Shown here: in pieces, positions 33,079 to 62,766 of the stretch | Layout: the number at the start of each line of letters is the position of its first letter | Position numbering within the stretch: the stretch's first letter is position 1 | Assembly (NCBI GenBank): GCA_038496445.1 | Contig: JALMLS010000062.1 | Location: 620,001-684,000, forward strand | DNA length: 64,000 nucleotides | Reading direction: 5' to 3' | Source: Trichosphaerium sp. ATCC 40318 | Lineage: Eukaryota; Protista; Tubulinea | Made by a program: the position numbers and the translations under genes | Notes under the pieces: model-generated | Database searches by the model: none | Told to the model about the DNA's origin: nothing | The model's input: the letters and a program-made list of their open reading frames with translations, nothing else

Positions 33079-33467
33079 TTAGCAGCTTCCACAAGCAGCT
33101 TCACTCCAGCAACACCATTTATCACTTCTGATACGGAAGCACAATGGAGATCCAGGGTAGCAGTATGCAGTTGAACCTATCAAAATAAACGTGAGATACT
33201 GAACAACACATTTTTCTTTTCACATACATTGACCATTCTTTTCACGACCACGTTTACGCCATCCAGGAGGACACCATCCATTTGTATCACATGTTTCACC
33301 ACACAACAGTGGTCCTTGCTAAATCGTATGTTAGAATACAAAGTAAGTGCTGCTGTTAGACTTACTTCAGTTGCTCGTTTAGCTCTTTCACTGAGCTCTT
33401 TAGATTGGACCGCCAAGGCAACAGCTAATGCCATGAGTACAAAAGCGAAAAGTGTTGTTGTTTGCAT
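33079..33467 (-). CDS. Secreted 10-Cys prepropeptide, leader type A, copy A1 (3 exons)
   Basis: MQTTTLFAFVLMALAVALAVQSKELSERAKR-ATE | QGPLLC...KNGQ | CSTAYC...AACGSC*; both introns GT-AG. Confidence 0.9.
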
Positions 33468-33774
33468 TGTTCTATGAGGTGTAGTTGTTCTTGTTATGGT
33501 TTTTATTTATGACTGGAAGGTCAATATGATTTAAGTCTCACGTGAAATGTTACGGTAAATTTTATTGTAAACACAAATATAATAGCGTTTCTGTTCTCTG
33601 TATTGATACCAAAGAGATTATGGATAAAAAGTTTAGCGAAAAAGAAATGAGGTAAAACGACTTATGATACTTTATTTCACTGAATACAACACTTAACTTA
33701 AACTGGATTTCTAAGTGCACTCAAACCAAAATACAAAACAACAACCAACGACAAACCTCTTCTTCAAACAACAA
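33468..33774. promoter_or_regulatory. Bidirectional promoter of peptide pair 1
   Basis: 307 bp between divergent ATGs; sequence blocks conserved with 35375-35716 and 62012-62345. Confidence 0.7.
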
Positions 33775-34188
33775 ATGAACACAACAATATTATTTGTATT
33801 GGTGACTTTGGCGTTGATACCAATTGCCTTGACGACCCAATCTAAAGACTCTGAAGAGATGCCAGATATGCACGAAAAAAGATCAACTGAGGTATGTCGA
33901 CACTTGCTACTTTTACTTTCAGTATGTTAATTAACATGCGGTTTAGCAAGGACCACTATTGTGTGGTGAAACATGTGATACAAATGGATGGTGTCCTCCT
34001 GGATGGCGTAAACGTGGTCGTGAAAAGAATGGTCAATGTATGTGAAAATCAAAGGTTGGTAGCAGACTTCTAAATACTTACCTTTATTAGGTTCAACTGC
34101 ATACTGCTACCCTGGATCTCCATTGTGCTTCCGTATCAGAAGTGATAAATGGTGTTGCTGGAGTGAAGCTGCTTGTGGAAGCTGCTAA
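33775..34188 (+). CDS. Secreted 10-Cys prepropeptide, leader type B, copy B1 (3 exons)
   Basis: MNTTILFVLVTLALIPIALTTQSKDSEEMPDMHEKR-STE, then the same exon 2-3 core as A1. Confidence 0.9.
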
Positions 34189-34569
34189 GATCTTGGCACT
34201 CCAATATGAATGTAAAACTAAATAAAGTACCCAAGTTTTACTACTATTCGTTTTCATAGTTAGGCTGCATTGTTTACAGTTCCAATTTCAACAAGAAACA
34301 CATTTTGTGAGCAATCGAATAGACAGCGCATAAACCAATAAGCTAGGCTAAATACATTAGCCATCCATGAAATTGCGCTTTGCAGACACCGGTTTACAGT
34401 AAACGTGAAACACACTGTTCAATCACTAAAACAACGTTCAACGTAGAGCAAAGTAAGCAGTACAGACTTACATTCACATTTTGAGCAAGTGATACCACAT
34501 CCAGGCAGGAAATGGCATCCCATTGATTTCTGCCTTTGTAGTCCAATCTGATTAGCTTAGAACTGTGAG

Positions 34570-34750
34570 AGCATGTCCCATTTTTGTGTAGTAGAACATG
34601 CCTCCTGGATGGAGTAGGCAAGTTCATGAAAAGCGTTACAGTTTATGCACAAACCAGGTTGCCCACTAGTATGCTACTACCCTGGATCATTACTAATAAT
34701 CTACTAATACCTAGAGGTGCTGCTGGAATGAGGCAATTGGCTGTCAGCAT
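34570..34750 (+). pseudogene. Decayed paralog of the 10-Cys peptide core
   Basis: Fragments PFLCSRTC, PPGWSRQVHEK, CYYPGS and CCWNEA, with frameshifts and stops. Confidence 0.65.
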
Positions 34751-34976
34751 GGATCACCTTGAACACTGAAACTTAATTAAATTATACAACTAAGACTTGT
34801 TAGTGCAACAAAAGCATGTAATAGTTCATTGAGACCGAAACATATGTGACTGATATTTATGCTACATTTTGATATAACCAGCACTTTAGTTAGTAAACTG
34901 TAGTCTGATCTACTTGTTGGTACTTTTATTGATTCTTTACAATGATATATGGTACAACAAGTAATGCTTTGCGATC

Positions 34977-35374
34977 TTAGCAGCTTCCACAAGCAGCTTC
35001 GCTCCAGCAACACCATTTATCACTTCTGATACGGAAACATAATGGAGATCCAGGGTAGCAGTATGCAGTTGAACCTAATAAAGGTAAGTATTAAAGAAGT
35101 CTGCTACCATTCTTTGGATTTTCACATACATTGACCATTCTTTTCACGACCACGTTTACGCCATCCAGGAGGACACCATCCATTTGTATCACATGTTTCA
35201 CCACACAACAATGGTCCTTGCTAAATCGTATGTTAGAATACAAAGTAAATGTAACAGCAGAACACGACTTACTTCAGTTGCTCGTTTAGCTCTTTCACTG
35301 AGCTTTTTAGATCGTACTGCCAAGGCAACAGTTAATGCCATGAGTACAAAAGCGAAAAGTGTTGTTATTTGCAT
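34977..35374 (-). CDS. Secreted 10-Cys prepropeptide, leader type A, copy A2
   Basis: MQITTLFAFVLMALTVALAVRSKKLSERAKR-ATE plus the identical core. Confidence 0.9.
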
Positions 35375-35716
35375 TGTTCTATGAGGTGTGGTTGTTCTTG
35401 TTATGGTTTGTATTTATGACTGGAAGGGCGAGATGATTTAAGTCTCACGTGAAATGTTACGGTAAATTATATTTGCTTTAAAATCGTAAGTCTACTTACA
35501 AAACCCAGATAGAATAGCGTCATTTGTTTTGGTATATTGATGGCTAACGATCGCGGAGCAATTGGTGGATTTAGCGAAAAAGAAATGAGGTAAAACGACT
35601 TATGATACTTTATTTCACTGAATACAACACTTAACTTAAACTGGATTTCTAAGTGCACTCAAACCAAAATACAAAACAACAACCAACGATAAACCTCTTC
35701 TTCAAACAAACAACAA
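35375..35716. promoter_or_regulatory. Bidirectional promoter of peptide pair 2
   Basis: Homologous to 33468-33774. Confidence 0.7.
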
Positions 35717-36124
35717 ATGAAAACAACAATGTTATTCGTATTGGTGACTTTGGCGTTGATACCAATTGCCTTGACAACCCAATCTAAGCACGCTCAAGAC
35801 TCTGAAGAAATGCCAGATATGCACGAAAAGAGATCAACTGAGGCACTTGCTACTTCTACTTTGTACATGACTAACATATGGTTTAGCAAGGACCATTGTT
35901 GTGTGGCGAAACATGTGATACAAATGGATGGTGTCCTCCTGGATGGCGTAAACGTGGTCGTGAAAAGAATGGTCAATGTATGTGAAAAGAAAAATGTTGT
36001 TCAGTATCTCACGTTTATTTTGATAGGTTCAACTGCATACTGCTACCCTGGATCTCCATTATGTTTCCGTATCAGAAGTGATAAATGGTGTTGCTGGAGC
36101 GAAGCTGCTTGTGGAAGCTGCTAA
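35717..36124 (+). CDS. Secreted 10-Cys prepropeptide, leader type B, copy B2 (intron-1 GT donor lost)
   Basis: B leader plus an intact core. An 8-nt deletion (tatgtcga) turns GAG|GTATGT into GAG|GCACTT. Confidence 0.75.
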   Translation: MKTTMLFVLVTLALIPIALTTQSKHAQDSEEMPDMHEKRSTEALATSTLYMTNIWFSKDHCCVAKHVIQMDGVLLDGVNVVVKRMVNVCEKKNVVQYLTFILIGSTAYCYPGSPLCFRIRSDKWCCWSEAACGSC

Positions 36125-36317
36125 TATCCACAAACGTGTAAAACTTGAAATAAAGTTCCCAGTTACAAATTCTTGTTTAATTAAGATTGATTGAAAAAAA
36201 GAAAGGATGTGTTTGTATGACAAGTGCTATGTAAGAAAAACGTCTACACTAAAATCTTGTTGAGGAGGAGCACAACAGAACAAACTCTAGCGATACAGTA
36301 TACTAAAAGTTAAAAAT

Positions 36318-39300: not shown

Positions 39301-39422
39301 TTTTCAGAAAAGGAGCGAAAACAACTTGGCATCTCCGATGTTAATTAGCTGGTTTAGTTAGTTTGTACCTTGGTCTCGGTAGTTGAAGGTTTTTCTACGC
39401 TTTCAATTTGTTTTGAAGCCAT
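36318..39422 (-). CDS. DUF3754 / TMEM143-like membrane protein with a long charged low-complexity insert, multi-exon
   Basis: LPDFVDKVWIYTRG, LFNEVTVQEPRFKEVVMLYR, IFLRAFRDIPM/ADVK, LIDEVQAQEWKEAVLGYFFL, IDFECDDALEKL; K/E/D-rich insert at ~37800-38280. Confidence 0.8.
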
Positions 39423-39830
39423 TTTTTATTACAATCCGTTAGTAATATTATGAGGTACTATAGTATACGTCAGGGGAGCTTTTGTACTGTTTGCGTACTT
39501 TAAGAAATTCGCAGAGTCAAAAAACAACTACGACGCGTCTACAAAGCAAAAGAAACCACCAAGTCGAAGCGTGACGTTAGTTACCTTTTTACCAGATTAA
39601 AAGAAATCTTAAACTCCAAGGACTTAATGGTAGCGCTACCGAAACGTTATTATTTTAGCAAAAACGTTTACAATACACGAATCCCTTGATAGTGGATCTT
39701 ACAATTTATTAAAGTGAACTAAAATTCTCACAAAATATGGAACCTTTTTCTTAATTACAAGGTGTTGGAATTGGCGAGATATCGATTGAGTAAAGTGGCA
39801 ATTCCAGGGTGACACAATTGGGGTTTTTTT

Positions 39831-42290: not shown

Positions 42291-42486
42291 TACACATCAA
42301 AATAAGAATTAACACGCACAGATTAGGCACAGACGTCATAGTGATTGCGTAAACGCGACCTAGAATGAACTAGGATACTCAAGCGCTTTGTACAGTCAGC
42401 TTTGAACTACCTTTAACTGAAAGCAGTACTAAGGTCAAACATTTTTGTGTTTTTAATTTTTTTTTTATTGTACAATATTATGAGTT

Positions 42487-43607
<1,121 letters not shown>

Positions 43608-43753
43608 AACGTTGGTTGTTTTTTCGTTAAAAAAAACTTAACAGGTTAAGCCACTAGTTTTGAGTTGGAAGCACGTGATAACTTTCATTTGTAACAGACA
43701 CAACACAAACTAATGCTCTAAGACTCAGTGTTTATTTTCGTCACTACAACAAG

Positions 43754-44524: not shown

Positions 44525-44816
44525 TGGTGTCTTTTGGTCAATACAATAAAATATCACATGTGTACGCTAACTTAACGGCGGTATACTAAAACGCGCTTTG
44601 GTAGTAGGAATATGTGGTAGGCGACTTTTGAGGCAGGCACAAAAAAAAACAAACAAGTGATCTTTCTTCTGTACCGTGAGTGCTCAGTAGCTCTTCTACA
44701 CAAAGATAATGCCAATGCAACACTGTTCGTTGAGACTGTTTGACTTGTGTACCAAGTTGATCGATTTTGAAAACCAAAAAAAAAACAGTTATTATTAATG
44801 GTATAATGAGGTACTA

Positions 44817-47800
44817 ATGGCCTCAAGTGGTAAAGGCGCACTGCAAATGTACAGTGATCATTGGCTCACCACCAAGGAAGAGTCTTTACTGTTTGATGCG
44901 AACCTCGTTAACCTAAAGTACAACGATGTGGCTACAGAGAAAGAATTTGATGTGAAGAAAAGTACCCGCGCTGTTTCTAAGGATAAGACGGACGAGGAGG
45001 TGAGAATTTTATTTTTTTTGTTATTTTATTGAGCTGACACTACAGAACACCGATGAAAGTCACAAATTAGTTGGTATAGTGGATGTGGACGAGTTTGAAT
45101 TCCACAAAAAAGCTGTCAAACGGTGGCGAACGGAATTGTTGGACACATGTACACCAAACCGAACCGCGCCCTCTTCGTTCCACTACACGCTTCAAAAACG
45201 CATGCAGGTTCAGAATTACCTTCATACAGTTCTTTTAAAGGACCAAAAGCGAAGAAAGAACATCAAGGTACGTTACTTACTTTTACGCTATTTTCAAAGC
45301 ATAAGATGCATCCACAATACAAAGCTGTAACGGCATGTATTTTTTTACCTGTCAACTGATAAATCAAAGAAATCGACAAGGGCATACCACGAAGAGCCTA
45401 CAAATATCCCAGTCGTAGTGCGACTTGGCGTTTTAACGCTGATTCCGTTGATCGAGAGCCTAAGTGAAGTCCAGGTATTTTATTCGTGTAATCATATTTT
45501 TTACAAGCGCCTTACAGCATGTAGGGCATTAATTATCAAAAATTATGCTTTCGCACTTTGGATATGTTTATTTCAGTTCTGCGCACTATAAAACGTCTCG
45601 GACTCAAGGACGAACCTACAGATTGTCTCGACGCGTTCAAAGACTTTATCTATAATTTAATTGAAAAAAACAAATTTACAATTGTACGTAACGCTATCGA
45701 TGCCTTGAATCGAAAATGGGTACTAATACAATCCTCAGGATTCACCAGAGAAATCTCAAGCTGTGGTAGCGCTTGTGGGATTAGCAATCTCAAGAGGAAA
45801 CGCTCATTTTCTTTTACAAGCAATTGACGTTTTATTTCGTATCTACAAAACTAACACGTATGTACACTTTGGAGGAACAAAATAATTTCTGTTCCGTTTG
45901 GTGAAAAATATTTAAATGAAAAAAAAAAGACTCACTGAGCGCGTCTCAGGTGTCATTATTATACTAACTGATATCTCTAGAAAATCCTCTAATGGTGCTG
46001 GACAAGCTCTGGACGTAGCTGATTTTTTAAAACAGTTAGCAACGTATAATCAAAAAACTAAGTTATCTATCCCACAGAGTGCTTTGTGTGGTACAAATCA
46101 ATTTTATTTTAGTTTTTCCAGGGCTGTTAAAGGGTATTGTTGACGTTTGTTATAAGGATCATGGGTACTAGAACTCGACAGAAAAAAACAACCAAAGAAG
46201 CCTCTTGAGTTTGCAAAGACTTCTGCAATAGCTTGTGATGGCACATATCTTTATTTCCATACTTCTGAAGGTGGTTTAAGTAAGATTGGCACTGGTAGAG
46301 AAGGTAACGCTTTTTATTGAGTCAAAATTTCAAAAAAAAAAATTAACTCGCAATAGGAACTGTTCAAGGTCTTCGTTATGTATCTAATTCTTCATACCGT
46401 ACAATGGATACAAATGTGTCTCTTGCATATACCAGAGGAAAATTGTATTATTACTCAGCTGCCTTGGCGCCAACTCCTGCTGTGGATGATCAAAAGAAGG
46501 AGGATGAAGCAAAAGCAGGCTCTTCTGAAAATCAAAAAGAAAATGAAAAGGATACAGTCACACCATCGTGTGTTGCTGTGATTGATCCTGTTACTTTGAA
46601 GCAAGAACAATTAATAACGTTGAACACAACAACAGCTGAGGGAACGCATTGGCTTCTCACAGAAGGCCGTTACTTGTATTTCTTGGGTGTAAAGAAGGTA
46701 TGTCAACGTTTCATATGGATCATACTCTAACATAGCGCTCAGCGTTCAGGAAAAGACCAAAAGGATAAACCAAAACCAGCTCAAGTTGATAAAATGGAAC
46801 AAGACGCTTTACTACCACCACCTACTGGCTTACACCCAGCCATTGCATTTGAGCTTGGCATGCCTGATGTCGACTTGAATATGCGTGATGAAGAAGAAGA
46901 CATGTCTTCCAGCGCTAGTTCTGAGTCTAGTGATTCTGATGACGAGGAAGAAGAGGTAAAAAACATGTCTTGTTGTTTTTATATCAGTATTAATAAATTT
47001 ATTCAGGTCGAAGAATGGGAAGATAGTGAGCCTCCAATAGACCCATTTTTGTCACGTGCCAACAAGGACGAAAAATTTGTAGTTGACATTTACGATCCTG
47101 CTCAAATTGGTTCGGATACACAAGAGTTATCTGAAGTGCAATCTCTACAGTTACAAGGACCAGAAATTGCTGGTGAATCAATAGCTCGTACGTTCTACAT
47201 TTCTTATTGGTTTCTAAAGGCTAATAATTATTTGTAGGTCATAATGCCCTTACATTGAATGATCTTCAAAAAGGCGCTTTTTATGTTACTGGTCACCAGC
47301 TCGTGGCTGTTGTATTATCATCAACAAATTCAAGGAAATCCAATAACAATCTTACTATTGCACGCACTTTCTCGTTGACTGATGGCAATTTCCTCGAAGA
47401 TAACACAATCGCTGGGGTACTATTTTTTAGCGCTAAACCTTTGAGTTTCTTATTGTTTTATGAAGCACACGTGCCAATTACGTATGTGTTACGAACACAA
47501 ATCAAACTTGATTTGGGGATACACTCACCCAGAGCGCCGCATCAAGACATGGCTGAATTTAGGTCTTGTACCACATATTGAAGATGGTGGTGTTGGTAAG
47601 ACTCAAACTACTTATTGTATTTTATAATAACTAACACTGGTATCATCATAGATGACATGACAGATAGCGGGCCAAGAGAGATGAAGCTTTTACCTTTCTC
47701 ACCAGAGTCAGTTCTTCAAAAGCCAAAATTTGTTGAGCTTGAGAAAGTATCTACAACCCCTGCTGATACATTCGGCCTCCCTTCACCGGCAGCAGTAAAA

Positions 47801-50800
47801 TTCATGCCTCTTGAGGCTATTTTCGTATTATTGGGTCACATGGACAGACTTGCAAGGCAACATCCATCTTATAATAAGACAGAAATTGTGGATGGTTCTG
47901 ACGAGTCATCTCGCGTCGATAGCCAGCCTTTCACAACTGGTATGAATTTAACGAGTAAATACATATCTTGCAGTGGCTTATTAGTGTATTCTTAGATTCT
48001 CATGGCCAAGTATTGAAGTTCCTACACTCCATATTAATTCATGGATTGGATTGCCTTGAGGTTAAGTCTTCTGGTATGTGTTTGTTTCATTATTGAGAGA
48101 ATTCTTTAACTGATTTCATACAGATGTTGACTTCCAAGTGAACACAATGCCGTATATCCTTATTTCTTGCTTGCGTTTATTGAAAGTGAACATGCATTTC
48201 ATTATAATGTCATCTTCGGATATGAAGCAAATGTTCCGTAAAGATGGTTTTGGTACAGCATTTTCTTCATTACTTATTTCTTCGTTTACACTTTCTTAAC
48301 TCATTCTAGCTGATGGCGGAGATGCTATGATCTCTCAAGTTCGAGGTTTGTTGTTAAGATTTATTCAGAACCCACCACTCGTCAAAGCGAATCCTGCAGC
48401 TTCAGCACTTATACAGGAAGCTGCAATCGATGCTTTGATTCTTGGTTTTGTAGTTTTTTACTCACAACCGGTTGATAAGATCCAATTTGTTCTCGAATTA
48501 CTATCTCGGGAAGACAACGAACCTGTTGGTAAAACAACGTTCCGTAGTCGCTTATTCTACGCATTGGCAGACTGGTGTCAAGTATCTGATATGCTCGGTA
48601 AAAACACCCCTGAGAAAAAGGATGAAAAGGCCGCAGCAGCACAAAAACCGAAGCGTGAGAAGAGTAAGGAACTCACTCAAGAAGCAAAAGTACCAAACGC
48701 GCTCACAATCAAATTCCTGGGTTCTCTGCTGAACTATGTTATAACTGAGGCTAGAATCGGTATTGATAAGCTCAGTACTATGCAAGGCGATCCACCAACT
48801 GTGGTACTTCGTCTATCACCTGCTGTTAAGTTGCTACTTTCGTTACAACGTGATATAGTAAGTAACTGCAGCACAGGAAAGGTACTACTATCAATTATAA
48901 TAGTAAACATAACCTTACTCAATTTGTTTGTAGGCTCTACTGTTAGAGTATAGTGCAATGTTTGTTAGACAGTGCACAGACTTGGCGAATTATGTTGTTG
49001 ACAAGCACGCTAAGCTCTTAGATGAAGAGGAGGTTGGTAAAAAACTAGTTGATGCTGTAGACAAACATCTCCAGTGCACTGTTATTGGCTCTGTATTGCC
49101 TTCTCTTGTACGTGTCACAATGCTTTTTTACCAGTTTATTTATTTCTTTTGCAACCACTCTATTTATTGTATCCATTAGGCTATCGCATTATCCAGGCGC
49201 AACCATGTAACAGACTTTAACTTGGTTACACCATCGTACTTTAACAACTGGCTTAACTTGCTTTCTGTTATTGACAAGATTAACCACAAATTGTCTGCTA
49301 CACGTGATGCTGATAACCGTTACTTGCGCCGTCTTAATCAAAAGAAAGAGAAACGTGTTGTAGTAGAATCGAAACATCCGTATCCAGCAGGAAGTGGTAA
49401 AAACTCCTTCAGGTATGTGAAATGAATGGTATAAGCTTGTATTTACATCTACCTTTAGAGTTTCTGTAAATGTTCCAGGTGCTAAGGCCTTATGCCTTTG
49501 GTTTGACCCTAGGTGTCGTACTGTTAGCGCCACGCAAGATATTGTTCATTTGCTTACATCGACGTCAATGGAACAGCCTCTATCTGGACCTAACAACGCT
49601 CCTATGCTTTTCGGTGGCACAAACTGGCCTAAGCAATCTCTCATTATTGATGGCGATACCGTCACGTTTGTATTCAACGCCACATCAAGAAACGACCTCT
49701 CAGCCGCTAACACAGCATCCGTACGCTGGGGCTTTAAGTGTGTTGTAACAGCCATACAAGCTACCGCTGGTGTACCTCAAACCATTACGCACTGGCTTCT
49801 CGATTTGGAGAATACTATTGCAGTGCTTGGTGCTAAATGCTCAGCTGCTCTTACAAAAGGAGAATCTCCAACAGAAAAGTACGAACTACCACAAGTTATT
49901 GTATTATGCTAACTTGAGTCATTATAGAGAAAAAGCAGTCGCTCCTTGGCTTGAAACCAGATTCCTTAATGGTGGCCTTGACGAGAGAAAGAAACCAAAA
50001 GATATGCAGTTACTAGATGACTTGGTTGAAGGAAGAGAAAATATACTACCTTTCTACAAGTGGGTCAAACGCCGAGCTCCCTTCCAAGTTGGCTCACTTG
50101 CCAGACCTTGGGTAGAGAAGGCTCAACGCGCTACAATTGCCGCAATTATTAAGCATCTCGGTACGTCTACCGTCAAACAAGGAGCTTTTCTATTTTTTTG
50201 TAGAACGTTGTTTTGACTCTGTTAGGTCTTACTGCTGAAATGAGTCGGTTCAACGATGCTCTTGTTGCCAAATCGAATCTACCACAGGGTACTATTGGCA
50301 AGTTCAGTCTTATAGCAAAGAAAACGAACCAAGTGACATCATGGCTAACACAACGTGGTCAAATGGAAAAACTTTGGCAAGTTGCATTATCTGAAAAGAC
50401 TCCAGATATTAGCGATACTTTTGAGACATACAGTAACAGCCCTGAAAAACTTCTCGACTTGTGTGAGATGAAGGGTGTAGAGTTCGATCTAATGGATTCT
50501 AACGAGACCATCAAGCGTCTGTTTAACAAACTACTTGATGAAATTGCTGAGGCTGAAAGAGTTGAGCGTAAGCGCAAAGAGGTATGTCTGAATTTTGCTC
50601 CAAAATATAATTTACTGACGAACGATTAGAGTGGCAAACCTGTTACCCCAAGAGCTGCGCAAAACGCATATGAAATCGTTGCTGGACCAGTGATTGAGCG
50701 TGCTAGACTTTTACTACAAATGGCTCCTTCTCAAAAACGTGTCAGGCCACCTACTGCTGTAGCTGATAATCCATATCATCGGTATGTTTTAGTCTTCGCT

Positions 50801-53800
50801 TTACTTTATTGGATACTTGATATTGATTACCTTTTGTTAGTGAGCAAGCCATGGCGCGCATGAGACAGAGTACACGTGGTGTTAATGTTAAATCAGAGGT
50901 TAGTGATGATCACCCTCTTGCCAAATCATTCTCGACCATTCCTGCCACTGCACACTCTGCCAATATTCAGAGAAAGCGTAGACAAGAGAGAGAACAACAA
51001 GCTGCTTTCCAGCGTAGAGTAAAGGCTTTACGAAGATGGGTCCATGCCTACGATAATTGGAAAGAATGGCAAGATAGTTCTCTTATGCCGAAAGGCAGAA
51101 AGACTGAGCTACCTCCTGAGTCTCCTATTCAAGGCGTCATCTCGTTCGTGAAGAGCGTTATAAGTGTAAAGGAGTTGGAGAAAGTAATCAAGGTCAATGT
51201 AACAAGAGCAAAGTCACGTGTTCAAGGTCTAGCCTTCTACAACCAACTCTTGTGCTTCTGCTCATTTGGATCAGTGCGCCATCAGCTCCTTAGCTCAATA
51301 GGAGCACCTCTAGGATCTGGACACTACCTTGACAACATATACACATGTGGAGAGGAACTAACGAACAAGGTGTCCGCCGAGTTTGCTGCATTGTTCCAAA
51401 AGTTTTCAGACATTGCTCACAATACAAAACTCGATCCGACTTCTCGTCTGTACGCTCTCAAGATATACGCGTTATCGTACAAGGACTTTGATGTTCAACT
51501 ATTGACCAGCACAAATGCATTTGGTTTATTGCGTAACATCATCTCTGAGAAATCTAAAGTCAAAGCCATCGCTGCTGTTGATGCAATGGACGTTGATACA
51601 CCTTTGCAAAATGGAGGAGACAATGTGACAAAACAACAGCAAGATCAAGAAGAGCAAGAGCTTCAAGAACAGCACCAACGTGAAGAAACCTTGCGACACT
51701 CTGCTTGGAATGCTTTTAGATTGCTTGCTGCTCAGTGTATTGAATGGGGCATTGGTAGAAAAACATCTGACCCTGTTCAAGATCAAGTACGTCAACTACT
51801 GAATGTTTATATCTCTTGTCTATCTAACTCTTGGTTGTAGGTATTTACATTAATGTGTCTCGAACTGAAGAGACTCTCTGAAAGTCTTAAAAAAGGAGAG
51901 AATTCAGTAAAGGGCTCAGAAGAGGATAGAGAGCAATGCTTCCAATTGCTTTCATTGTTGTACCTTCTGGGTGGATCACAAACACATTTACGTGCTTCTG
52001 AGAATGTTGATAACTTGATAACCCTACTCGATGAGACTACCGCACCAAGATCACAACGTCTCATTTTAAGGTATGTACCAAAAGTTACAGTGTTCCAGAA
52101 ACCTTTTTTTGCTAACACCCTTCTTTCAGATTGTGCCGAAGAATCTTACCGGTACAAACCAAGGCTGATCCAAAACTTATTACGTTCTTCCTCGATGAGA
52201 TTGGTCGTTGGCTGTTTAAGGGAAAATACCAACAACCAAACACTGTTGATACTCCTAGACAACCTGAAGAGCCTAAAGCCGTAAGTTTATCATATGATTG
52301 TGAAACATGTTGACGTTACTATCTAGGCACCTACACAAGCCGATGACGAAGATAGCGACTCTGAAGAAGAGCCAGCACAGTCCACCGAACGCTACGCTGT
52401 ATATATTCACTCTTGGGCGCTCGGTTACAAGCGTCTTGTTGAGGCTTGCGTGCAAGTTTTCGACGCTGATTTCCTAAGACAAGCTGGATCAAATGCTGGA
52501 TACGGTAGGTTTGCAGCACAAAATGCTGAAGCCAAAGCACAACAAACCATTCAAGAGATACAATCCAAAGAAAAAGCTTTATTGAAGGTTGGTACTGAAG
52601 ACCAGTGCAAACGTCTTGCTGCTGCTCTTGGTGGCTCAGGTGCTACAGTATCAGTCACTCTCGCACCCGATGAAGATGGTGACGAAACACAAGAAGGTCA
52701 AGAAGTGACGCCAAATCAAAGTAAGGTCAAAAATAATCCACAACATTGGGCAGATGGTTACGCTGCATATTCGCTATCATCTGAACATATCGCACTTGTT
52801 CGATACCTGATGCACTCGCCTACCTGGGCAAAAGTCATTCGTGATGAATTGAAGGTAACGAGTGAATGCTGTAAAGCAAAAACTTTTAAACTAACAAACT
52901 GCATAGAACAACCTTCTGAACATACCTAAAGTAATGCAAATATTGCAAGACGGAGGTAGCGATATCAGTCAGATCGTACCAAGAACGTTGGCTGCACTAT
53001 GTATAGTTGGTGGCTTCCATGAGGTATGCTAGTAGAACGATTGGATTAGATTGTATGTCTGATTCTCACTGTTTTAATTTAGAATATTCGTATCGGTGGT
53101 AAAGTAAGCACAATGATAGGAAGTGATGATACTCGTTTCGCCACAGTGGTTGGCTACCAACCTGGTATCTCATCAATAGCCGAGGTAGTCTATGACGATG
53201 ATCCTACAACAACTATTCACAAGTTGGATACCAAACTACTACAGCCTTCAACTGAGATTAAACTTCATAGAGACGTCATTGAGAAGATAGTACCTGATGT
53301 ACGTGTTGGCTATGTCTCGTTGGTTTGTTATTTACTAACTTATGTTGTCATTAGCTATTACCATCGTTCCTGTCTGTTATTAGATCTTCGAATGAAATGG
53401 ACGTTGATTCTAGTGCTATGTCAACACAGGGCAAGGGATTATACCCAGAATTTGTTTCTAGATCCCTCGCTGCTCTTTGTGAATTGTCAAAAACATCACA
53501 AGCAGCTAACCTCATATTATCATTGGGCAAAGACAAGGTATGTTCCTGTTTACTTATATATCACGAAAATGTTTTAACTTAACACTTGTGATAGATATCG
53601 ACAATGATAGATATGGCAAAAGGCTCAGACTCTCGTGTCAGTGCTTCTGACATGGAACGTGATGCATTCTATCTTGCTCAACGTCTATGGAACATTGTAA
53701 CCTCACCTGTATCCAACGAAAAAATTGGAAACTCGATGAAGTCTATCCTACCATATTTCCTTCATGCTAAGATGGTTGATATTACGCCTACTTGTTTCAA

Positions 53801-56800
53801 GTATGTTATATTTTACTCCTTGGATTTTATTTTAAACTAAGTGGACTATTAGGTTGGTTAAGAACAAACAACAGCAGCAAGGTCTAATCTTCTGGGGAGA
53901 TGATATGCGTACCATTGAGCTCACAAACGGTCGCTTCTCTGGCGGCGGTGGACGAGGTGGTCGTGGCTCCCTATTTGGCGGTGGGTATGGTTCTCGACCT
54001 CCTGGTAGAAAAGGAGAACAGTTATTCCATGCCAATGTTGCTATTCCCGTTAAAGTTCCAGAGTTTTACTTTGAAGTTGAGATAATCAAAGCTGATTCCA
54101 ACTCAAGTATTGTCAGTGTTGGTTTTGCACCTGAAGGTCAAACGACGTGGGGACAAGGAAGTTATAGATACCAAGCCAATAGAGTGCGTACATGGTTCGT
54201 TAATGGTGCTAGACGCCAGGAAGCTTATGGCGCCCACTATCGTGCCAAGTGTGTTATTGGCTGTGGATGGAAAAAGAATGGAGGTGTTATTTTCTTCACA
54301 AAGGACGGAGAAGACCTTGGAGAGGTGACCAACTTGCTTTATTTAAAACCTTAGTTTGTATTATATTGACTTTTTGTTGTAGGCCTTTAATTCTGTACAA
54401 TTGGGCAATTTATTGCCTTGTATCGGTCTAAGCAAGGGTGTCAAAGTCAAAATCAACTTTGGCCAAGAAAAATTCAAGTATGTCATGGTACCAGACGAAA
54501 ATATCGACCCTGAAGAGCTTGCTCGTCGTAAGAAGGAGAGTGATGAAAGACGTAAACGTGATATTGAAGAAGAAGAAAAACGACGCAAGAAAGAAAAGGA
54601 AGATCGCGATGCTGCCCAGAAGGAAGCAGCACAACCAATGATTGCTATGGGATACGAACTAAAACAAGCCATACGCGCCCTTGAAGCTACAGGCTATCAA
54701 GGTATTGAACCTGCAATCAACTGGCTCCTTGACAACGGCGATGCTGGATTTGAAGAGGAAGAAGAACCAAAACCAGAAGAGCCTGAAGAGGATACAACTG
54801 CTAAACCTGATGACAAAGGTAAAGCTGAGGATGACGGAACAGGAGAACCTGATTCTAGTGATCCTAACACTCCAGCCGAAGAAGGATACAATCCAAAGAG
54901 CAGTCAAAGTTATCAATTGCCTGATGGTTACACATACCCAGCTGATTTCTTGCTTTCCCAAGAGGATGCTAAACAAAACGATATGTTAACTGAATGGGAA
55001 GAAAGAGTAATACCTGAGATTAAGGCTTGGATGGAGAAGGATGGATACCCTCGCTTTGAAGTGTCAGAGTATATTCAACAAATTAAAAATGAGTTGATGA
55101 ATGGTGACGAAAACTCAGCACGCACAATGGTCTTACAAATTCTTGGTGACTCATCTGCTAATATAAGGTACTGTTTGATTGTTTTTATGCGTGTCCTTGT
55201 TCTAATAGTTGTAAGGTTACCTTCCGGCACAAGCCAAGCTGCCAAGTCTCAACCGAAGAAACAACAACTTGATATTGATCGTGTTGTTGTTGGTTTACTT
55301 TTGTCGGTTAAAGAACAAGACCCAACTGATATCTCATCTCGTCATTGGCTCTCTGCAATGAACGCTACAATGGGTAGAATTGGTTGTGTTAAAGCTGTAG
55401 ATAGAAAGGAGAACCTCATCTTTTTGGAGTTCTACGATCCAGAATCTGGTGTTCTTAAAGAGTGGTGGTTCCCAGTTCAGACTCTACAACGCCCTGCTGC
55501 CACACAAACAGGAGTTGAAAAGTCTTTAAATATACCATTCGTGAATGCTGCCTATGATACAGTGCAACAACAGCTTGTAACCACAGAATCACAACTCGGC
55601 CGTATATACATGCGCAGAATTGTGTTATCCTTGTTGAGGCATACTGGCTTGGATAAGAACGGTACGTTTAGAAATCAAATTTGGATCTCCTTTTTGTGGC
55701 TTATTTTTCTGTTAAGGTTTGAATGTTGATGATCTACTTCAACTGAGTGCTGCGGAATACATGTCATCTGATACTGTTATTGCTACTAATAAACTACTTC
55801 GTGGTAGCGAGACTGTTAAGGGTATGGAATTGATTGACAGCAAGCTTGTTGAGCTGTACAAGAGAGGAAGTGAGGCAGAACTGACACAATTGCTATCAAC
55901 GAAGGCTGTTAAAATGCTACGCAGATTTGGTAAACGTATGATAGACAACCAATCCATTGTCAATGCTAAAAACGTACGACTTGGTCCTATATTCATAAAC
56001 AAACCCAAGAGAACGAGCTTACTAATTTCTTAGGTTGGTACAATCACAAAGATTAGCGTACCTGACACCAGGTCAATGATGGTTGTATTTGATCGATCCA
56101 CAAACCTGCCTGCTGATTCTAAAGGAAAACTTGGCTTCTACCTAGACGCTGAGTGCACCAAACCTGTAAAGGTATTCCCTGGTGTTGGACCGTTCCTCCC
56201 ATTCGTTATTGATGCCAATGAATCATTCATTCGTCTAAAGGTACTATTTCTATTCCATCATCTCTTCAGTTTATACTGACCTTGTTTTAAAAGGCCAAAT
56301 CGAAGATTGCCAATTGCAAGTTCAAGCTAGACGCATTGCCACTATCAGTGAATGCACCTCTAAGTAAATGGCTTGTTGAGTTCATTGTAGATCAAGGCTT
56401 TAAATTATCGCCTACATCACCTGACCTTGTACCTGTATTCAACTGTATTCTAGATTTTATATACCATTCAAAAACACCTTCCAATCTAAAGGAGGGTATG
56501 TATAACCTCTTGGCATCTACTTTCGGACGTCTAAGAAGAGACAGCGCTGGAAGAGAGACGCTAAAGAAACTTCCTTTGAAGGTACTATTTTTTCAAAAAA
56601 AAAATGGAGTTGACAGGTTTGTTTTCTTATGCTGTCTGTAGCGCCTTTCAAAGCTGAAACAAGAAATGCAATACCTTTATGAACAAGAGACAAAGAGGGG
56701 TGTATTACACTCTACGTACTTGCAGAGCTTAACAGAATTCATGGTTGAGGTCAAACTATTCGATCTTGAAGTCAAAGCAATGCGTCGTTCTAGAATGAAA

Positions 56801-59800
56801 AAAGACGATACACTCTCTGTTGCTATTTATTTAAGCTCCTTCCTTGAATTAAAGAAGGAATCTATCGAAAAGGCATCCAAAGGTGCGTTAATAAGAACAC
56901 TCCGCGTTTCATTGTTCGTTTAGCGAGCTAACCGTATTATCAAGGTGAGAAGGCCAAAACAGAGCCATCAGGCGATAGTGAGTTGGAACGTGCCCTCAAA
57001 GCCTCCCTCGCAAACGCCAATGCAGGAGAAGATGCTCCTGCAACTCAAGCCCAGGATGATGCATCATCTGGAGGATCCCTATCATGTTCAGGATCTGATT
57101 CTGAGGACGCCGATTTTAAGGCTGCTCTTGAAGCCTCTGTTCAGTCTTTTGGTGGTGACGCCGCTCCAATGGAAGTTGACGCTCAACCAACTCCAGTAAA
57201 ATTGGATTTTGATGTCGCCAACGATGATGAAGACGATGACGATGAAGAAGAAGCAATGCGTGCAGCCATCGCAGCCTCTCTTGCAACCCACGAACCAGAA
57301 AATGCCGGAGAAGGACAAGCCGATTCTATGGAAGTGGACAAGCCTGAAGAAGCTGCTGATGATACCAAACCTTCTGAAGATAAGTCAGAGGATAAACCAG
57401 AAGAAAAGCCTGAGGATAAAGAACCTGAAAACAAGGAAGAAGAAGAGCCTAAAGAACCTATTGACGACAACCAAAACCAAGGTGGACTTGCACCTCCGCC
57501 TGTTCCAAACATGTTTGGCTTTGGTGGTGTAGGTGGCGAAGAAGATGACTTAGCCATGGCTATACGTCTCTCAATGGCTCAAGGTGACGGTGAAGGCTTT
57601 AGTATCCCGGCAGATATGGATCCAAACATGCCTATGCAGATAGACTTGAACCGTGTACTTCAAGAGTCACTTGGTGGCGCTGATTTGGGATTCCCATTTG
57701 GTGCTCCAAACAATCAAGATGACAACCAAGACAATCAACCTAAGGATGACGATAAGGCTGAAAACGATGGAAACGACAATAAGGATACTGGTGATAAACC
57801 AGACGAGCCTATGAAGGACGTTGAACCTAATGTCGATGGTGCTGAACCTAAAACACCAGCTCCACCAAAACCACGTAAGTTTTTTTGTTTTAAATCTATG
57901 GATTTTGTATTGTTGTTTGTTTAACTCTTTTATGTGTTTAGCTACTGGTTTCCCTAAACCTCCTACGAAAAAGACTAAGTCTAGAAGGTCTCGACCTACT
58001 GAAACCGACTGGTTCATTAAGATTTGTGCAGTAACACAAGTCTTGGATGTTCTTTGCTTCAGAAAAAAGAAGGCTTATCCTTTCCGCCGTCAAGTGCTTC
58101 ATGATTTGACAAGGAAGAGCTGGCAGGAAACAAAGAAGGAGACTATCAAACCACGGATCATTATGGTTGAGAATCTTCCTTGTGTTCCTCTTGATCGCCA
58201 CTCAGAACTCGTTTCTACACTTGCTGTAGTTTTCGATGACTTGATCGCAAGTGTCCGTAATAGCCTTTATGTACCTTTCGATCATGCCAACAAGATAAGT
58301 TGCAAGTACGTCAATCCCTTTATTTAAATCCAAGCCTACTTGTGTGCTAATCATAAACTACCTAGCTTTGGTTTTGTTGAAATACAGAGCTTGTCTAAGG
58401 TTGACGAAGCAATTGAAAAGCTTTCCAAGTATAAATTCAAACTCCCTCAACAACTAAAGGATGTTGTTCCTAAAACAGATAAGACATCTTATTCATTAAA
58501 AGCAAAGAGCTTTTTGGAGCTAGAAACGAACAAAGACCCACGTGTAACAATTGTACGTCATTTCAAAAAAATTAGTACATGTAAGCGCTGACCTCTTTTT
58601 GTTTTAGTTCCTTAAAGGACTGTTGTATGACGAGAGCAAAAAAGAATTATCTCCTGCCTTCAAGAAAGTGCTATCAGAGGTGTTCGTTTTATTCGCTGGA
58701 GACAAAGCAGGTGTTCTTGGTATGTGGTCACTAAAGAAAGATTGTTACTTTATTCAACACATTACTTATTGGTTTTTTTTACTACAGACTTTAAAGCGTT
58801 ATCTGCACTACAGCTTCAATCAATGGGTGAAAAAATGGATCAAAAGACTTTTGACTTTATAGTATCCAAGTACGATAATAACACAATCGTTCGTGAAGTC
58901 CCAGGTAAAGATGGTGCCGAGTGCGTTTCAGAAAAGATTCATGGTCTAACCCTAAAGGTACGTTGTCTCTGTTTTTTTTTGTTTGGCCTTTCTGTCTAAT
59001 GTACGATAAAGGGATTCATTGCACACTATGAAACAGATCAAGTACCTAACCAAGATCCTGGGTACACTTGGTCAGAGCTAGAGGCTCTGGGTTACGACCT
59101 GCACCTTGAACGCAGTTTCTACTTTAAGCTTGAAGATGCTATTACAGCTATGGAGTCTAATCACTTTGCAAAACTGATTGTTGATGAACAAATTGTTCGT
59201 TATGCTGAAGACCTTGTAGCAGAGTTCGAACTGGCATCTCCTTTGCTTCTAAGTCACTCCCACATCAAACCTATCGAAGAATCAAATTATCTTTCTCAAG
59301 TGTTCCCTCTTGTTGCCAAACTTCCTTTGCCTGCACTAAGGCTCAGGTTCCAAATCTTGCACCACTTGAATACCGCTCTTAAAGATGTGCTATCATGCAT
59401 AAACTTTGGATCAAGCGGATGGCTCTCTCAGACGGTGACAAAGTGTCGTGGGTTAATGTTCCACATGGTCAAGATGACATTCTTCTACAAGGTCTTGGGC
59501 CAAACTGCTGTCAAGGTACTGAATACTTCTGTTTTCGTTTCTAAGAACCCAGATTTTGACTTTTTTTCTTGAAGGTACCACAGCCTACTGTATCTATCAA
59601 CAGGCTCAAACTTGCTGCTGTTAAAGAGAAGGACCCACCAAAATGTCTTGATGATTATCTTAAAAACACGTGCTTTGGTATTACATTCCATCACTTGAAG
59701 AAGACCCCACCATCACACTTTAGACAAAAGAAACCTCCTGGCGCAGAACCTCACTTTGCCTTGAAGATTGACTTTAAAGGAGAAAACGTTGAGGGTGAAG

Positions 59801-61093
59801 GTGGTCCATACCGACAATTCTTTACTGATATCTCACGTGAGCTCACACACGTGCTACCGCTATTGATACCTTGCCCTAATGCCATTACTGGCACTGGTAC
59901 GCTTATTTTCGATGTAGAATGGTTTTTTTTTTGTTCTGACATTTCACCTAAGGTAAGAACCAAGATAAGTATATTACAGCTCCATCGTGCAAATCCCGAG
60001 TTCATTTGGAAATGTACAAGTTCCTTGGTAAATTGATGGGCATGGCTATACGAACAGGCGTCATGTTGACAATTGACTTTCCAGAGTTCTTTTGGAAGCC
60101 TCTTGTTGGACAACCATTAGAGCTAGCGGATCTCAGTAAGGTCGACAAGTCGCTTTATGGGTTCCTTGAGTTTATCAAAAACTGCGAACGCGAGGTACCT
60201 ATATTTCTAACTAATACCAGCGGAATGCTGACTCCTTTGTCAAGGATCTTGAAGGACCAAACCGCAAGATATTCGAAAAGTTCCAAATATTGCTAAGCGA
60301 TAAGACTGAAGTGTTATTGAAGCCTCATGGTGACCAAATAGATGTCAACTGGGCAAACAGAGGAGAATATGTTGATTTAGTCATTTCTAAACGACTACAT
60401 GAAGCTAGAGCTCAGACTAACGCCATACGTGAAGGTACGTACCTAACAAAGATACTGTAGTATTTCTTGAGTGCATAAGCTAATAATCTGTTTAGGTATG
60501 AACTCTGTTGTACCACCTATGCTCATGAAGATATGCACTTGGCGCGATTTAGAATGGCGCGTCTGTGGCAAACCAATCATTGACATTAAGCTCCTTAAAC
60601 GTCATACAGAATATAGTGGTGTTCTTCCTACTGCACCTCATATTATGTACTTTTGGCAGACACTGCAGAGCTTCTCTCAGGAAGATAGAAGGTAAACAAT
60701 CGTTAACCCTCAATAATATCAAGAAAAAAAAAAGGATTTTTCTTGAGGTGCAATATCTTCGTGATACTTATCTTTGTTAATAGAGCGTTTGTTCGCTTTG
60801 CATGGGCACAAGAGAGACTACCAGGTTCTGATCAAGAATTCGAACGCACACGGACACGCATGTTGATCAAACCGTTCGATACATCTAACCCTGATAATTG
60901 CTTCCCAAAGGCTGATACTTGTTTCTTCAACCTTATGCTCCCAGCCTACTCTAGTGCTGAAATTCTGCGTAAGCAGTTCTTGTTTGCTATCCACACAGAC
61001 GCTGACTCTATGGATGCGGATGATCCTCAAGAAGAGGAACCACTAGGACGGCCTACACGAACAGGATTATCGGCCTTTTTGGATTTTAGGTAA
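44817..61093 (+). CDS. Giant HECT E3 ubiquitin ligase (HECTD4-like): ESKHPY/CUB-like, SPRY, UBA, UIMs, RRM-like, HECT; many exons
   Basis: ACDGTYLY...GGLSKIGTG, VVESKHPY, SPRY FYFEVEI...IGCG...IFFTKDGEDLG, UBA AMGYELKQAIRALEATG...AINWLL, UIMs, HECT FKGENVEGEGGPYRQFF...FAWAQERLP...PKADTCFFNLMLPAYSS. Confidence 0.92.
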
Positions 61094-61304
61094 ACCTTTT
61101 GCCAATTCACAAAAAAAAGTGTAAACATTTTTCAACCGAACCAAAAAACAAACCTGAACAGACCCTATTGGCATATTTTGTAAATTGTACCACAATATCC
61201 ATGCAATAAATGTACAGATCCTACCTGTAAAAAGTGTCTTTTGAGTCATTGATCAAAAAAAGTTGGACAGAAAAGCAATTTCACGTATTTCTATGGTACA
61301 CGTG

Positions 61305-61618
61305 TCAAAATGTGAAGGTACGTATGTACTGCTTACTTTAGCTCTACGTTGAACATTATTTTAGCAATTGGACAGTGTGTTTCACGTTTATAGTAAACCT
61401 GTTTCTGCTAAAGCTCAATTTCATGGATGGCTAATATATTTAGCAATGCTTATTGTTTTATGCACGCACATTAACATGCGCTGTCTATTCGACTAACTCA
61501 CAAAATGTGTTTCTTGTTGAAATTGGAACTGTAAACAATGCAACCTAACTATGAAAACGAATAGTAGTAAAACTTGGGTACTTTATTTAGTTTTACATTC
61601 GATTGGAGTGCCAAGATC
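61305..61618. repeat. Inverted duplicate of the B1 3' flank (34189-~34485)
   Basis: Reverse complement of gatcttggcactcc...ttgtttacagttccaatttcaacaagaaacac...gtgaaacacactg...gtaagcagtaca. Confidence 0.9.
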
Positions 61619-62011
61619 TCAGCAGCTTCCACAAGCAGCTTCGCTCCAGCAACACCATTTATCACTTCTTATGCGAAAGCATAGTGGAGATCCAGGGTAG
61701 CAGTATGCAGTTGAACCTATCAAAATAAACGTGAGATACTGAACAACACATTTTTCTTTTCACATACATTGACCATTCTTTTCACGACCACGTTTACGCC
61801 ATCCAGGAGGACACCATCCATTTGTATCACATGTTTCACCACACAACAGTGGTCCTTGCTATACAAACAATAGTTAGAAAAGGAAATGTAAGAGGAGATC
61901 TTGACTTACTTCAGTTGCTCGTTTAGCTCTTTCACTGAGCTCATTAGATTGGACCGCCAAGGCAACAGTTAATGCCATGAGTACAAAAGCGAAAAGTGTT
62001 GTTGTTTGCAT
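61619..62011 (-). CDS. Secreted 10-Cys prepropeptide, leader type A, copy A3
   Basis: MQTTTLFAFVLMALTVALAVQSNELSERAKR-ATE plus the identical core; TGA stop. Confidence 0.9.
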
Positions 62012-62345
62012 TGTTCTATGAGGTGTGGTTGTTCTTGTTATGGTTTGTATTTATGACTGGAAGGTCAATATGATTTAAGTCTCCATTTCACTTGAATTTT
62101 ACGGTAAATTATATTTGTTTCACTATCGTAAGTCTACTTTGCAAAACCCAGATAGAATAGTGTTGTTGTTTTAGTATATTGATGACTAACGATCATGGAT
62201 AACAAGTGTTGGATTTAGCGAAAAAGAAATGTGGTAAACAGCTTATGATACTTTTATTCAGTGAATATGAAGACTTAAATCGTCTAAGTGCATTCAAACA
62301 AAACCAATTTACAAAACCTCAACCAACAACAAACCTCATCTTCAA
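62012..62345. promoter_or_regulatory. Bidirectional promoter of peptide pair 3
   Basis: Homologous to the other two spacers. Confidence 0.7.
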
Positions 62346-62766
62346 ATGAAAACAACAATATTATTTGTATTGGTGACTTTGGCATTGATACCAATTGCCT
62401 TGACGACCCAATCTAAGCATGCTCAAGACTCTGAAGAAATGCCAGATATGCACGAAAAGAGATCAACTGAGGTATGTCGACACTTGCTACTTTTACATTG
62501 TATTGTTAATTAACATGCGATTTAGCAAGGACCACTGTTGTGTGGCGAAACATGTGATACAAATGGATGGTGTCCTCCTGGATGGCGTAAACGTGGTCGT
62601 GAAAAGAATGGTCAATGTATGTGAAAATCAAATATTGGTAACACTTCTTTAATACTAACCTTTATTAGGTTCAACTGCATACTGCTACCCTGGATCTCCA
62701 TTATGCTTTCGCATAAGAAGTGATAAATGGTGTTGCTGGAGCGAAGCTGCTTGTGGAAGTTGCTAA
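62346..62766 (+). CDS. Secreted 10-Cys prepropeptide, leader type B, copy B3
   Basis: MKTTILFVLVTLALIPIALTTQSKHAQDSEEMPDMHEKR-STE plus the identical core. Confidence 0.9.

Follow-up and report, generated by a model that had tools for sequence, protein, structure and literature searches.

The precursors of yeast alpha-factor, the KP6 killer toxin and the Euplotes pheromones share one order of parts, in which a signal peptide and a short propeptide are followed by a Lys-Arg (KR) site and a disulfide-bonded mature product, and in Euplotes it is the mature part that varies between alleles. Defensins, macins, mytilins and knottin-type peptides form a second group of secreted peptides, of about 60–75 amino acids with 8–10 cysteines; their surface is basic and aromatic, they are made as prepropeptides from clustered genes, and their leader is usually conserved while the mature part diversifies. 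Two further systems are relevant for their genomic arrangement. Histone clusters and fish antifreeze arrays consist of tens of silently differing copies that encode one protein, and the ampliconic palindromes of sex chromosomes carry inverted copies that are closer within a pair than between pairs. To our knowledge, next to nothing is described of the peptides that free-living amoebae secrete, saposin-like pore formers excepted.

Here we describe a gene family of the amoeba Trichosphaerium sp. ATCC 40318 that resembles each of these systems and departs from each of them. Its sequences predict the layout of the kexin-processed precursors, but no sequence similarity to them was found and no fold match came from a model of pLDDT 55; its precursor carries one peptide instead of tandem repeats, and its mature part is invariant where that of Euplotes differs between alleles. 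With the defensin-like families it shares size, cysteine content, surface character, prepro layout and clustering, whereas the usual roles of leader and mature part are reversed (mature dN/dS 0.006). Its many silently differing copies recall histone and antifreeze arrays, which suggests amplification for quantity, although the product is predicted to be secreted and disulfide-rich, the genes lie in dispersed head-to-head pairs and not in long tandem arrays, and each pair bears two promoter/leader types. As in ampliconic palindromes, inverted copies are closest within a pair, but the arms are only ~400 nt long and homogenisation reaches no further than exon 2, exon 3 and the 3' side. The best explanation of the data as a whole, to which we assign a probability of roughly 60%, is a lineage-restricted, dosage-amplified family of secreted Cys-rich peptides, made in bulk and directed at a non-evolving target.

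Gene models and copy number

The window, that is, the whole 64,000-nt stretch of DNA that was analysed, contains six genes of the family in three head-to-head pairs. All six three-exon models proposed in the first-pass annotation were reproduced exactly, and are listed here with the associated features:

33079–33467, minus strand: gene 1, leader A; exons 33366–33467, 33228–33318 and 33079–33176; GT-AG introns of 47 and 51 nt; 96 aa; reference core
33468–33774, no strand: intergenic region common to both genes of pair 1; 307 nt from ATG to ATG, with separate conserved promoter blocks for the A and B genes
33775–34188, plus strand: gene 2, leader B; exons 33775–33891, 33947–34037 and 34091–34188; GT-AG introns of 55 and 53 nt; 101 aa; reference core
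34590–34760, plus strand: remnant of a family copy in advanced decay; stops break up the surviving collinear fragments PPGW, YYPGS and CCWNEA
34977–35374, minus strand: gene 3, leader A; exons 35273–35374, 35130–35220 and 34977–35074; GT-AG introns of 52 and 55 nt; 96 aa; reference core
35375–35716, no strand: intergenic promoter region common to both genes of pair 2; 342 nt
35717–36124, plus strand: gene 4, leader B; exons 35717–35842, 35887–35977 and 36027–36124; intron 1 donor GCACTT, not GT
61619–62011, minus strand: gene 5, leader A; exons 61910–62011, 61768–61858 and 61619–61716; stop codon TGA
62012–62345, no strand: intergenic promoter region common to both genes of pair 3; 334 nt
62346–62766, plus strand: gene 6, leader B; exons 62346–62471, 62526–62616 and 62669–62766

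Each gene starts with an ATG, closes with a stop codon and has three exons; the introns measure 44–55 nt and all end in AG. The spliced products of 96–104 aa all contain the same 62-aa, 10-Cys core, in agreement with the earlier reading. GT donors are found at both introns in five of the six genes. The exception is gene 4, which has GCACTT at the intron 1 donor after a small deletion and offers no in-phase GT donor, and since the donor is not GT, both the splicing and the function of this gene are doubtful. Its unspliced 135-aa open reading frame (ORF) follows the coding frame in exons 1 and 3 but not in exon 2, so that the earlier remark that the ORF track reads exon 2 in the wrong frame is correct for this gene.

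The proposal of a six-gene family did not survive a genome-wide count, while the high gene dosage proposed with it did. The family comprises ~49 loci in three subfamilies, and ~41 of these loci look intact; the copies are scattered across more than 20 contigs. The count may include uncollapsed alleles (C584 versus C15, 99.8% identical; C480 versus C152, 98%). Most genes stand in head-to-head pairs (n = 12 genome-wide) with one member per promoter/leader type. An exactly identical core is encoded by 27 copies, and the remainder are nearly invariant. Some intact-looking copies are probably dead and keep their appearance through gene conversion, namely gene 4, the copy at C12:684992 with a non-GT donor and the copy at C40:126328 with a frameshift in the signal peptide.

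Leaders, promoters and predicted precursor processing

The prepropeptide would consist of a hydrophobic signal peptide, a charged propeptide of 9–16 aa and a mature peptide of ~65 aa that would start at (A/S)TEQ. Every leader begins with a short polar segment, continues with 14–16 hydrophobic residues and closes with a small-residue Q-S end, after which the propeptide runs to its invariant KR. The motif KR-(A/S)-T-E is the same in 41 of 41 leaders across all three subfamilies, while other leader positions vary. The genome also encodes a kexin/furin-like convertase. The P-domain (PF01483) exceeds its cut-off at 3–4 loci, and the locus on contig C36 combines it with subtilase catalytic motifs, including SWGPxDDG and GTSxSAP. 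The layout of a putative signal peptide, a propeptide and KR recognised at first reading is supported. Cleavage by signal peptidase and then by a kexin/furin-type convertase would be expected from the sequence to set the mature peptide free in the secretory pathway.

Besides 10 Cys, which presumably pair in five disulfides, the mature peptide contains four Trp and a strongly basic RKRG loop; Trp, Tyr, Gly and Pro are abundant in it.

Two leader types, A and B, were described in the first-pass annotation as unrelated. That there are two types and that both end in KR holds, whereas their unrelatedness does not: A and B leaders are collinear homologues that align end to end with 64% nucleotide identity, and recombinant leaders (signal-A/pro-B) are present. 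The promoters are likewise of two kinds. In pair 1, the A gene is preceded by a TATA-like TCATAAATA together with a CACGTG element and the B gene by a TTTAGCGAAAAAGAAATG block, and genome-wide the A- and B-specific blocks are kept in at least 11 of 12 pairs, with upstream sequence type tracking signal-peptide type. At the other end of the gene, AATAAA occurs 20–79 nt past the stop codon in 37 of 41 copies compared with 8% of background windows, and several types of 3' flank exist among the copies. Three blocks recombine separately: the promoter with the signal peptide, the propeptide with intron 1, and the core with the 3' end. Because the A and B promoter-leader modules remain distinct, one product is probably placed under two regulatory inputs.

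Selection and exchange between copies

Among the six copies of the window, 12 of 189 core nucleotides vary; 11 of the differences are synonymous and the twelfth is a stop codon (TAA versus TGA), which upholds the earlier statement that all core differences are silent. Given ~38 synonymous and ~148 non-synonymous sites in the core, the neutral chance of 11 silent changes out of 11 is ~3e-8. The same pattern extends to the main subfamily, in which 30 copies give a dS of 0.21, a dN of 0.0014 and a ratio of 0.006, and across 36 copies 34 codons vary while the amino acid is altered at only 5. These values confirm the strict purifying selection on coding genes that had been postulated: extreme purifying selection holds the mature peptide invariant. 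A comparison of codon usage is uninformative, as the copies are not independent.

As had been noted, leaders and introns diverge while the core does not. Exons 2 and 3 differ by 2.7–5.2% without indels, the introns by 12–14% plus indels, or three to five times as much as the adjoining exons, and the flanks by 11–23%. Superimposed on selection, exchange between the arms of each head-to-head pair further homogenises the cores, which differ at a mean of 4.4 positions within a pair versus 7.7 between pairs (permutation p < 1e-4). Since this homogenisation takes in exon 2, exon 3 and the 3' side but ends before intron 1, promoter, signal peptide and propeptide stay of two kinds. The architecture is a clean natural example of modular evolution, in which selection and local conversion act on different parts of a 400-nt gene.

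Relatives and possible roles

The core has the cysteine spacing C-3-C-5-C-14-C-4-C-6-C-8-CC-5-C-2-C, a framework that the first-pass annotation did not recognise and for which sequence and profile searches of Pfam, PDB, collections of 5.8 and 1.84 billion proteins, and metagenomes gave no homologue; no match to an already characterised family was detected in the databases covered. A word-indexed search of 5.8 billion proteins returned nothing for the core or for the unspliced 135-aa ORF of gene 4. Three phmmer matches from an exhaustive search of 1.84 billion representatives were rejected as internally repetitive proteins lacking the Cys pattern, and no transcript-derived family protein occurs in either collection. 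In Pfam, no family was matched at E up to 10, the spacing fits no model, and there was no significant profile match to defensin, knottin, hevein/CBM18, granulin, WAP, EGF and similar domains. PDB sequence matches to a plant MBD protein and to aerolysin domain 1 were sub-threshold (E 0.5–1.8) and involved a PPGW or GW motif only. JGI metagenome contigs yielded 475 pattern matches and zero relatives, and IMG/VR viral contigs a single 13-residue match, lying in no related ORF and rejected as chance. Look-alikes of single exons in the ESM Atlas (lantibiotics, cyclotides, spider toxins) scored 0.76–0.84, which is chance level and below 0.85. The single-sequence AlphaFold2 model has a mean pLDDT of 54.9, too poor for excluding any fold, and Foldseek comparison of this model with the PDB gave nothing at E <= 0.001; the paralogues are more than 80% identical and therefore add no covariation for structure modelling. 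No RNA run was listed in a sequencing-run search with a 3.2-kb query, only ~1.2 kb of it exonic; PMC10521059 gives BioProject PRJNA833396 for the public RNA-seq data of Trichosphaerium. A literature search on cysteine-rich secreted peptides of Amoebozoa gave nothing relevant, and the word "cysteine" is absent from the Trichosphaerium genome paper (PMC10521059).

Many copies of one unvarying product suggest a bulk need and a target that does not evolve away, and the target may belong to the class of membrane lipids, glycans or minerals rather than to co-evolving proteins. With near-zero amino-acid tolerance in ~40 apparently intact copies, this orphan family is, on sequence grounds, a strong candidate for one of the marine amoeba's major extracellular products, with candidate roles in defence, feeding, coat building or signalling. 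Trichosphaerium is a bacteria-eating marine amoeba, and our leading guess, a tentative one held at less than even odds, is that the peptide serves in defence as an antimicrobial, either secreted or phagosomal; the net charge of the mature peptide is only ~+2, modest for a membrane-active antimicrobial. Of the roles proposed at first reading, an identity or mating signal fits poorly, because the mature peptide is invariant among copies while the leaders vary. A toxin caught up in an arms race is disfavoured too, since change is confined to the leader and the mature part stays frozen. A bolder version of the bulk-product reading, which we regard as possible but doubtful, is an undescribed disulfide-rich family, possibly with a new fold, among the amoeba's most amplified secreted products, whose paired A and B modules would deliver the frozen peptide in two physiological or life-cycle contexts. 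If true, it would establish a novel class of protist peptides for defence or for building the coat, with the unusual feature that leaders evolve and the payload is frozen. If the peptide proved antimicrobial or material-binding, its compact scaffold with five predicted disulfides would have practical value.

A structural or adhesive role in the extracellular coat would likewise call for bulk material with a physical target; the peptide would then be a small disulfide-locked, aromatic-rich module that binds polysaccharide or mineral. Many copies of an unvarying product are expected under this idea too, and the richness in Trp, Tyr, Gly, Pro and Cys would suit it. Trichosphaerium builds a fibrous test and, in one life stage, calcite spicules; the sequenced isolate, however, is the spicule-free form (PMC10521059). 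Moreover, no carbohydrate-binding or matrix family was matched in Pfam or PDB, and a single repeat-free module of 65 aa is small for a matrix protein. We consider a coat role unlikely. Less probable still is a role as a secreted peptide signal, whether an autocrine factor for growth or density or an attractant of gametes, with A and B promoters switching by life stage. The prepro-KR layout of pheromone and hormone precursors, an invariant mature part befitting a receptor-locked ligand and two distinct conserved promoter types would agree with it, but signals work at low concentration and seldom need ~40 gene copies, no receptor candidate is linked to the family genes, and the lack of allelic or mating-type variants in the mature part speaks against an identity signal.

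A silent or selfish amplification, in which the palindromic pair is a mobile foldback-like unit conserved through recent copying and gene conversion, would account for the dispersal of copies over more than 20 contigs, for pairs that are inverted repeats with detectable arm-to-arm conversion and for the perfect core retained in some defective copies. We hold it to be very improbable. Recent copying alone cannot explain a dS of 0.21 with almost no replacements, the promoter blocks and poly(A) signals are conserved, and the intron enclosed by the putative conversion tract shows three to five times the divergence of its neighbouring exons. A foldback or terminal-inverted-repeat (TIR) transposable element was rejected because the copies have no common sharp termini or shared outer boundary: homology past the stop codon breaks off at scattered points, anywhere from 58 to more than 1200 nt.

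Six three-exon genes in the window

All six gene models of the first-pass annotation were reproduced exactly when the window sequence was read and its exons were assembled by script. The genes form three pairs (1 and 2, 3 and 4, 5 and 6), each with one gene bearing leader type A and one bearing type B, a leader being a putative signal peptide plus a propeptide ending in KR. These genes, a relic and a neighbouring copy are listed below (window positions unless a contig is named).

33079-33467, minus: gene 1, leader A, product 96 aa
33775-34188, plus: gene 2, leader B, product 101 aa
34590-34760, plus: decayed family relic between pairs 1 and 2, with collinear PPGW, YYPGS and CCWNEA remnants and several stops
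34977-35374, minus: gene 3, leader A, product 96 aa
35717-36124, plus: gene 4, leader B, product 104 aa
61619-62011, minus: gene 5, leader A, product 96 aa
62346-62766, plus: gene 6, leader B, product 104 aa
C12:684992-685398 (window-equivalent 64992-65398): seventh good-looking gene (L047/L018), reference core, ~1 kb past the window's end on the same contig

Each of the six genes runs from an ATG through exon 1 (102-126 nt), intron 1 (44-55 nt), exon 2 (91 nt), intron 2 (49-55 nt) and a 98-nt exon 3 with the stop codon at its end. Acceptors are AG throughout and donors GTAAGT or GTATGT, the sole exception being intron 1 of gene 4, which starts GCACTT following a small deletion and lacks an in-phase GT donor there. 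GC content of the window is ~38-39%; the published Trichosphaerium sp. assembly has 37.69% GC and short introns (PMC10521059). As had been claimed, the 62-aa core with its 10 Cys is identical in all six spliced products, and its nucleotide differences are silent: 12 of 189 positions vary, 11 of them synonymously and the twelfth as TAA vs TGA in the stop codon. With ~38 synonymous and ~148 non-synonymous sites, 11 silent changes out of 11 have a neutral probability near 3e-8. The remark that an unspliced ORF track reads exon 2 in the wrong frame is right for gene 4, whose 135-aa unspliced ORF is correctly framed in exons 1 and 3 but misreads exon 2 because its two introns total 93 nt.

Elsewhere in the window, a run of long open frames on the plus strand (46800-58300) has UBA, UIM and SPRY domain matches; these frames are probably exons that make up one or two large ubiquitin-related genes. 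The window also holds a protein-kinase exon (355-912).

Family size, head-to-head pairs and leaders

The genome (70.3 Mb, 642 contigs) was searched at the DNA level and by six-frame protein search, and all places were fetched and their models rebuilt exon by exon. Family matches fell on >20 contigs in the DNA search; the protein search recovered these places again without adding remoter relatives. The supposed six-gene family thereby grows to 49 loci with an exon 2, of which ~41 look intact and ~7 are plainly defective, with stops, frameshifts or exon losses. The exact 62-aa core is encoded by 27 copies. The main type comprises 30 copies; the second has 6, one residue apart (N28R), each a single gene located on C15 or C65; the third has 5, with a 63-aa core that carries ~8 replacements and ends differently at the C-terminus. 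Full-length divergence is 5-18% for most loci, and the only pairs that might be uncollapsed alleles are C584 vs C15 (99.8%) and C480 vs C152 (98%). The former, L039 (C584:1-2500) against L036 (C15:100000-104500), extends over 2.5 kb and probably reflects allelic copies or a duplication in the assembly. In the C584 copy the C-terminal end is altered and extended, and the last Cys is lost.

Twelve head-to-head pairs exist genome-wide, with ATG-to-ATG spacings of 279-359 nt. Nine, including the window's three, join an A-leader gene to a B-leader gene; the remaining three (C224, C287, C465) contain a gene whose A-type signal is followed by a B-type propeptide. The two leaders had been called unrelated, a description that does not hold: a full-length alignment of the two (M-TT-LF...AL...QSK...KR-TE) shows 64% nucleotide identity and two indels, of 3 nt and 12 nt, and four genes join an A-type signal peptide to a B-type propeptide. 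In segment clustering, the upstream region tracks signal-peptide type and intron 1 tracks propeptide type, while intron 2 and the 3' flank are reassorted relative to both; beginning with exon 2, A and B genes differ no more than copies of the same type do. Recombination in blocks within the family is evident from these comparisons. The third subfamily carries both leader types, and the A/B duality is therefore old.

Separate conserved blocks adjoin each gene in the pair intergenic region: on the A side, a TATA-like TCATAAATA ~50 nt upstream of the ATG plus a CACGTG element, and on the B side, one TTTAGCGAAAAAGAAATG and one TTATGATACTTT block. Together with the leaders, these make two conserved promoter and leader modules. 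AATAAA occurs 20-79 nt past the stop in 37 of 41 copies, compared with 8% of random windows. Transposon-like termini were sought and none was seen, homology downstream of stop codons breaking off at many different distances. A dispersed ~2-kb repeat, 90-93% identical among L043 (C25:339000-343000), L044 (C3:767000-771000) and L045 (C131:121500-125500), contains only an exon 3 fragment of the peptide gene (residues ~35-62) and might be a mobile element that picked up a piece of a family gene.

Core differences average 4.4 positions within pairs vs 7.7 between pairs (permutation p < 1e-4), which agrees with arm-to-arm gene conversion. The C12:684992 gene combines an A-type signal with a B-type propeptide and shares the GCACTT intron 1 donor of gene 4; a relic region similar to that between pairs 1 and 2 adjoins it (34601-35503 is homologous to window-equivalent 64863-65785). 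The C40:126328 gene (L002/L013) has lost one base early in the signal peptide, causing a frameshift, and its exons 2-3 still give a perfect core, differing from its partner at 3 silent sites and nowhere else. These three intact-looking copies, two without a GT donor and one frameshifted, are probably non-functional. Since their cores are perfect, conversion from a partner can mask decay, and C40:126328 reads as an example of such a masked dead copy.

Selection on the core and its putative role

Strict purifying selection, as first proposed, is borne out. Pairwise comparison of the 30 main-type copies gives means of 0.21 for dS and 0.0014 for dN (ratio 0.006), and dN/dS between subfamilies is 0.04-0.19. 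Across 36 copies 34 codons vary, only 5 with an amino-acid change, 4 of these in single copies. When segments are compared one at a time, divergence is 2.7-5.2% without indels in exons 2 and 3 and 12-14% in introns 1 and 2, with indels there totalling 6-8 nt. In the flanks it is 11-23% over the 150 nt before the gene and ~21% on the 3' side. Intron 2, though lying between two conserved exons, diverges three to five times faster, and exon conservation therefore reflects selection on the protein, not copying alone. The same pattern is the best available evidence for the exon-intron model. Judged by these measures, the loci constitute a genuine family of small genes that is amplified and under selection.

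The peptide, whose Cys framework went unrecognised at first reading, resembles nothing detectable in the searches made. No match was found in Pfam (E up to 10), among PDB sequences (no significant match) or in a word search of 5.8 billion proteins with the core or the unspliced ORF, and metagenome contigs held no relative. An exhaustive HMMER search of 1.84 billion representatives returned repeat artefacts only, the sole viral-contig match spanned 13 residues and was judged chance, and Atlas look-alikes of single exons scored at chance level. A single-sequence AlphaFold model, unreliable at pLDDT 54.9, yielded no fold match. The Trichosphaerium genome paper does not mention the family, nor does it contain the word cysteine (PMC10521059).

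The mature peptide is frozen, the leaders are changeable and the copies number in the tens. Toxins in an arms race, antimicrobial families that diversify, and pheromones of mating or identity show the reverse, which speaks against the identity/mating signal suggested earlier and also against an arms-race toxin. The pattern points to a product that is required in large amounts and acts on a non-evolving target. Our leading guess is a defence (antimicrobial) role, at a probability of about 35%. Less probable is a role in the coat or in material binding, a signalling role is rather unlikely, and other roles take up the remainder.

Putative processing and secretion

The KR site proposed at the end of the leader withstood wider comparison: KR followed by (A/S)-T-E is kept in 41 of 41 leaders, other leader positions being variable, and marks a clearly conserved dibasic site. 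The putative signal peptide is suggested by a hydrophobic stretch and a Q-S end. The propeptide would be cleaved by a convertase and the mature peptide, presumably with five disulfides, would be secreted; the family may be highly expressed. A conserved basic loop in the core (RKRGREK; RRRGREKR in the third type) might, speculatively, be cut by a convertase as well, which could in principle yield a two-chain form.

Convertase P-domain proteins are encoded at 3-4 loci of the genome, and on C36 kexin-type catalytic motifs adjoin the P-domain; the machinery assumed by the first-pass annotation is therefore present. The C36 locus (L050, C36:151711-154881, minus strand) is a multi-exon kexin/furin-like proprotein convertase gene with subtilase catalytic motifs and a P-domain, and further P-domain matches lie on C188, C27 and C11.
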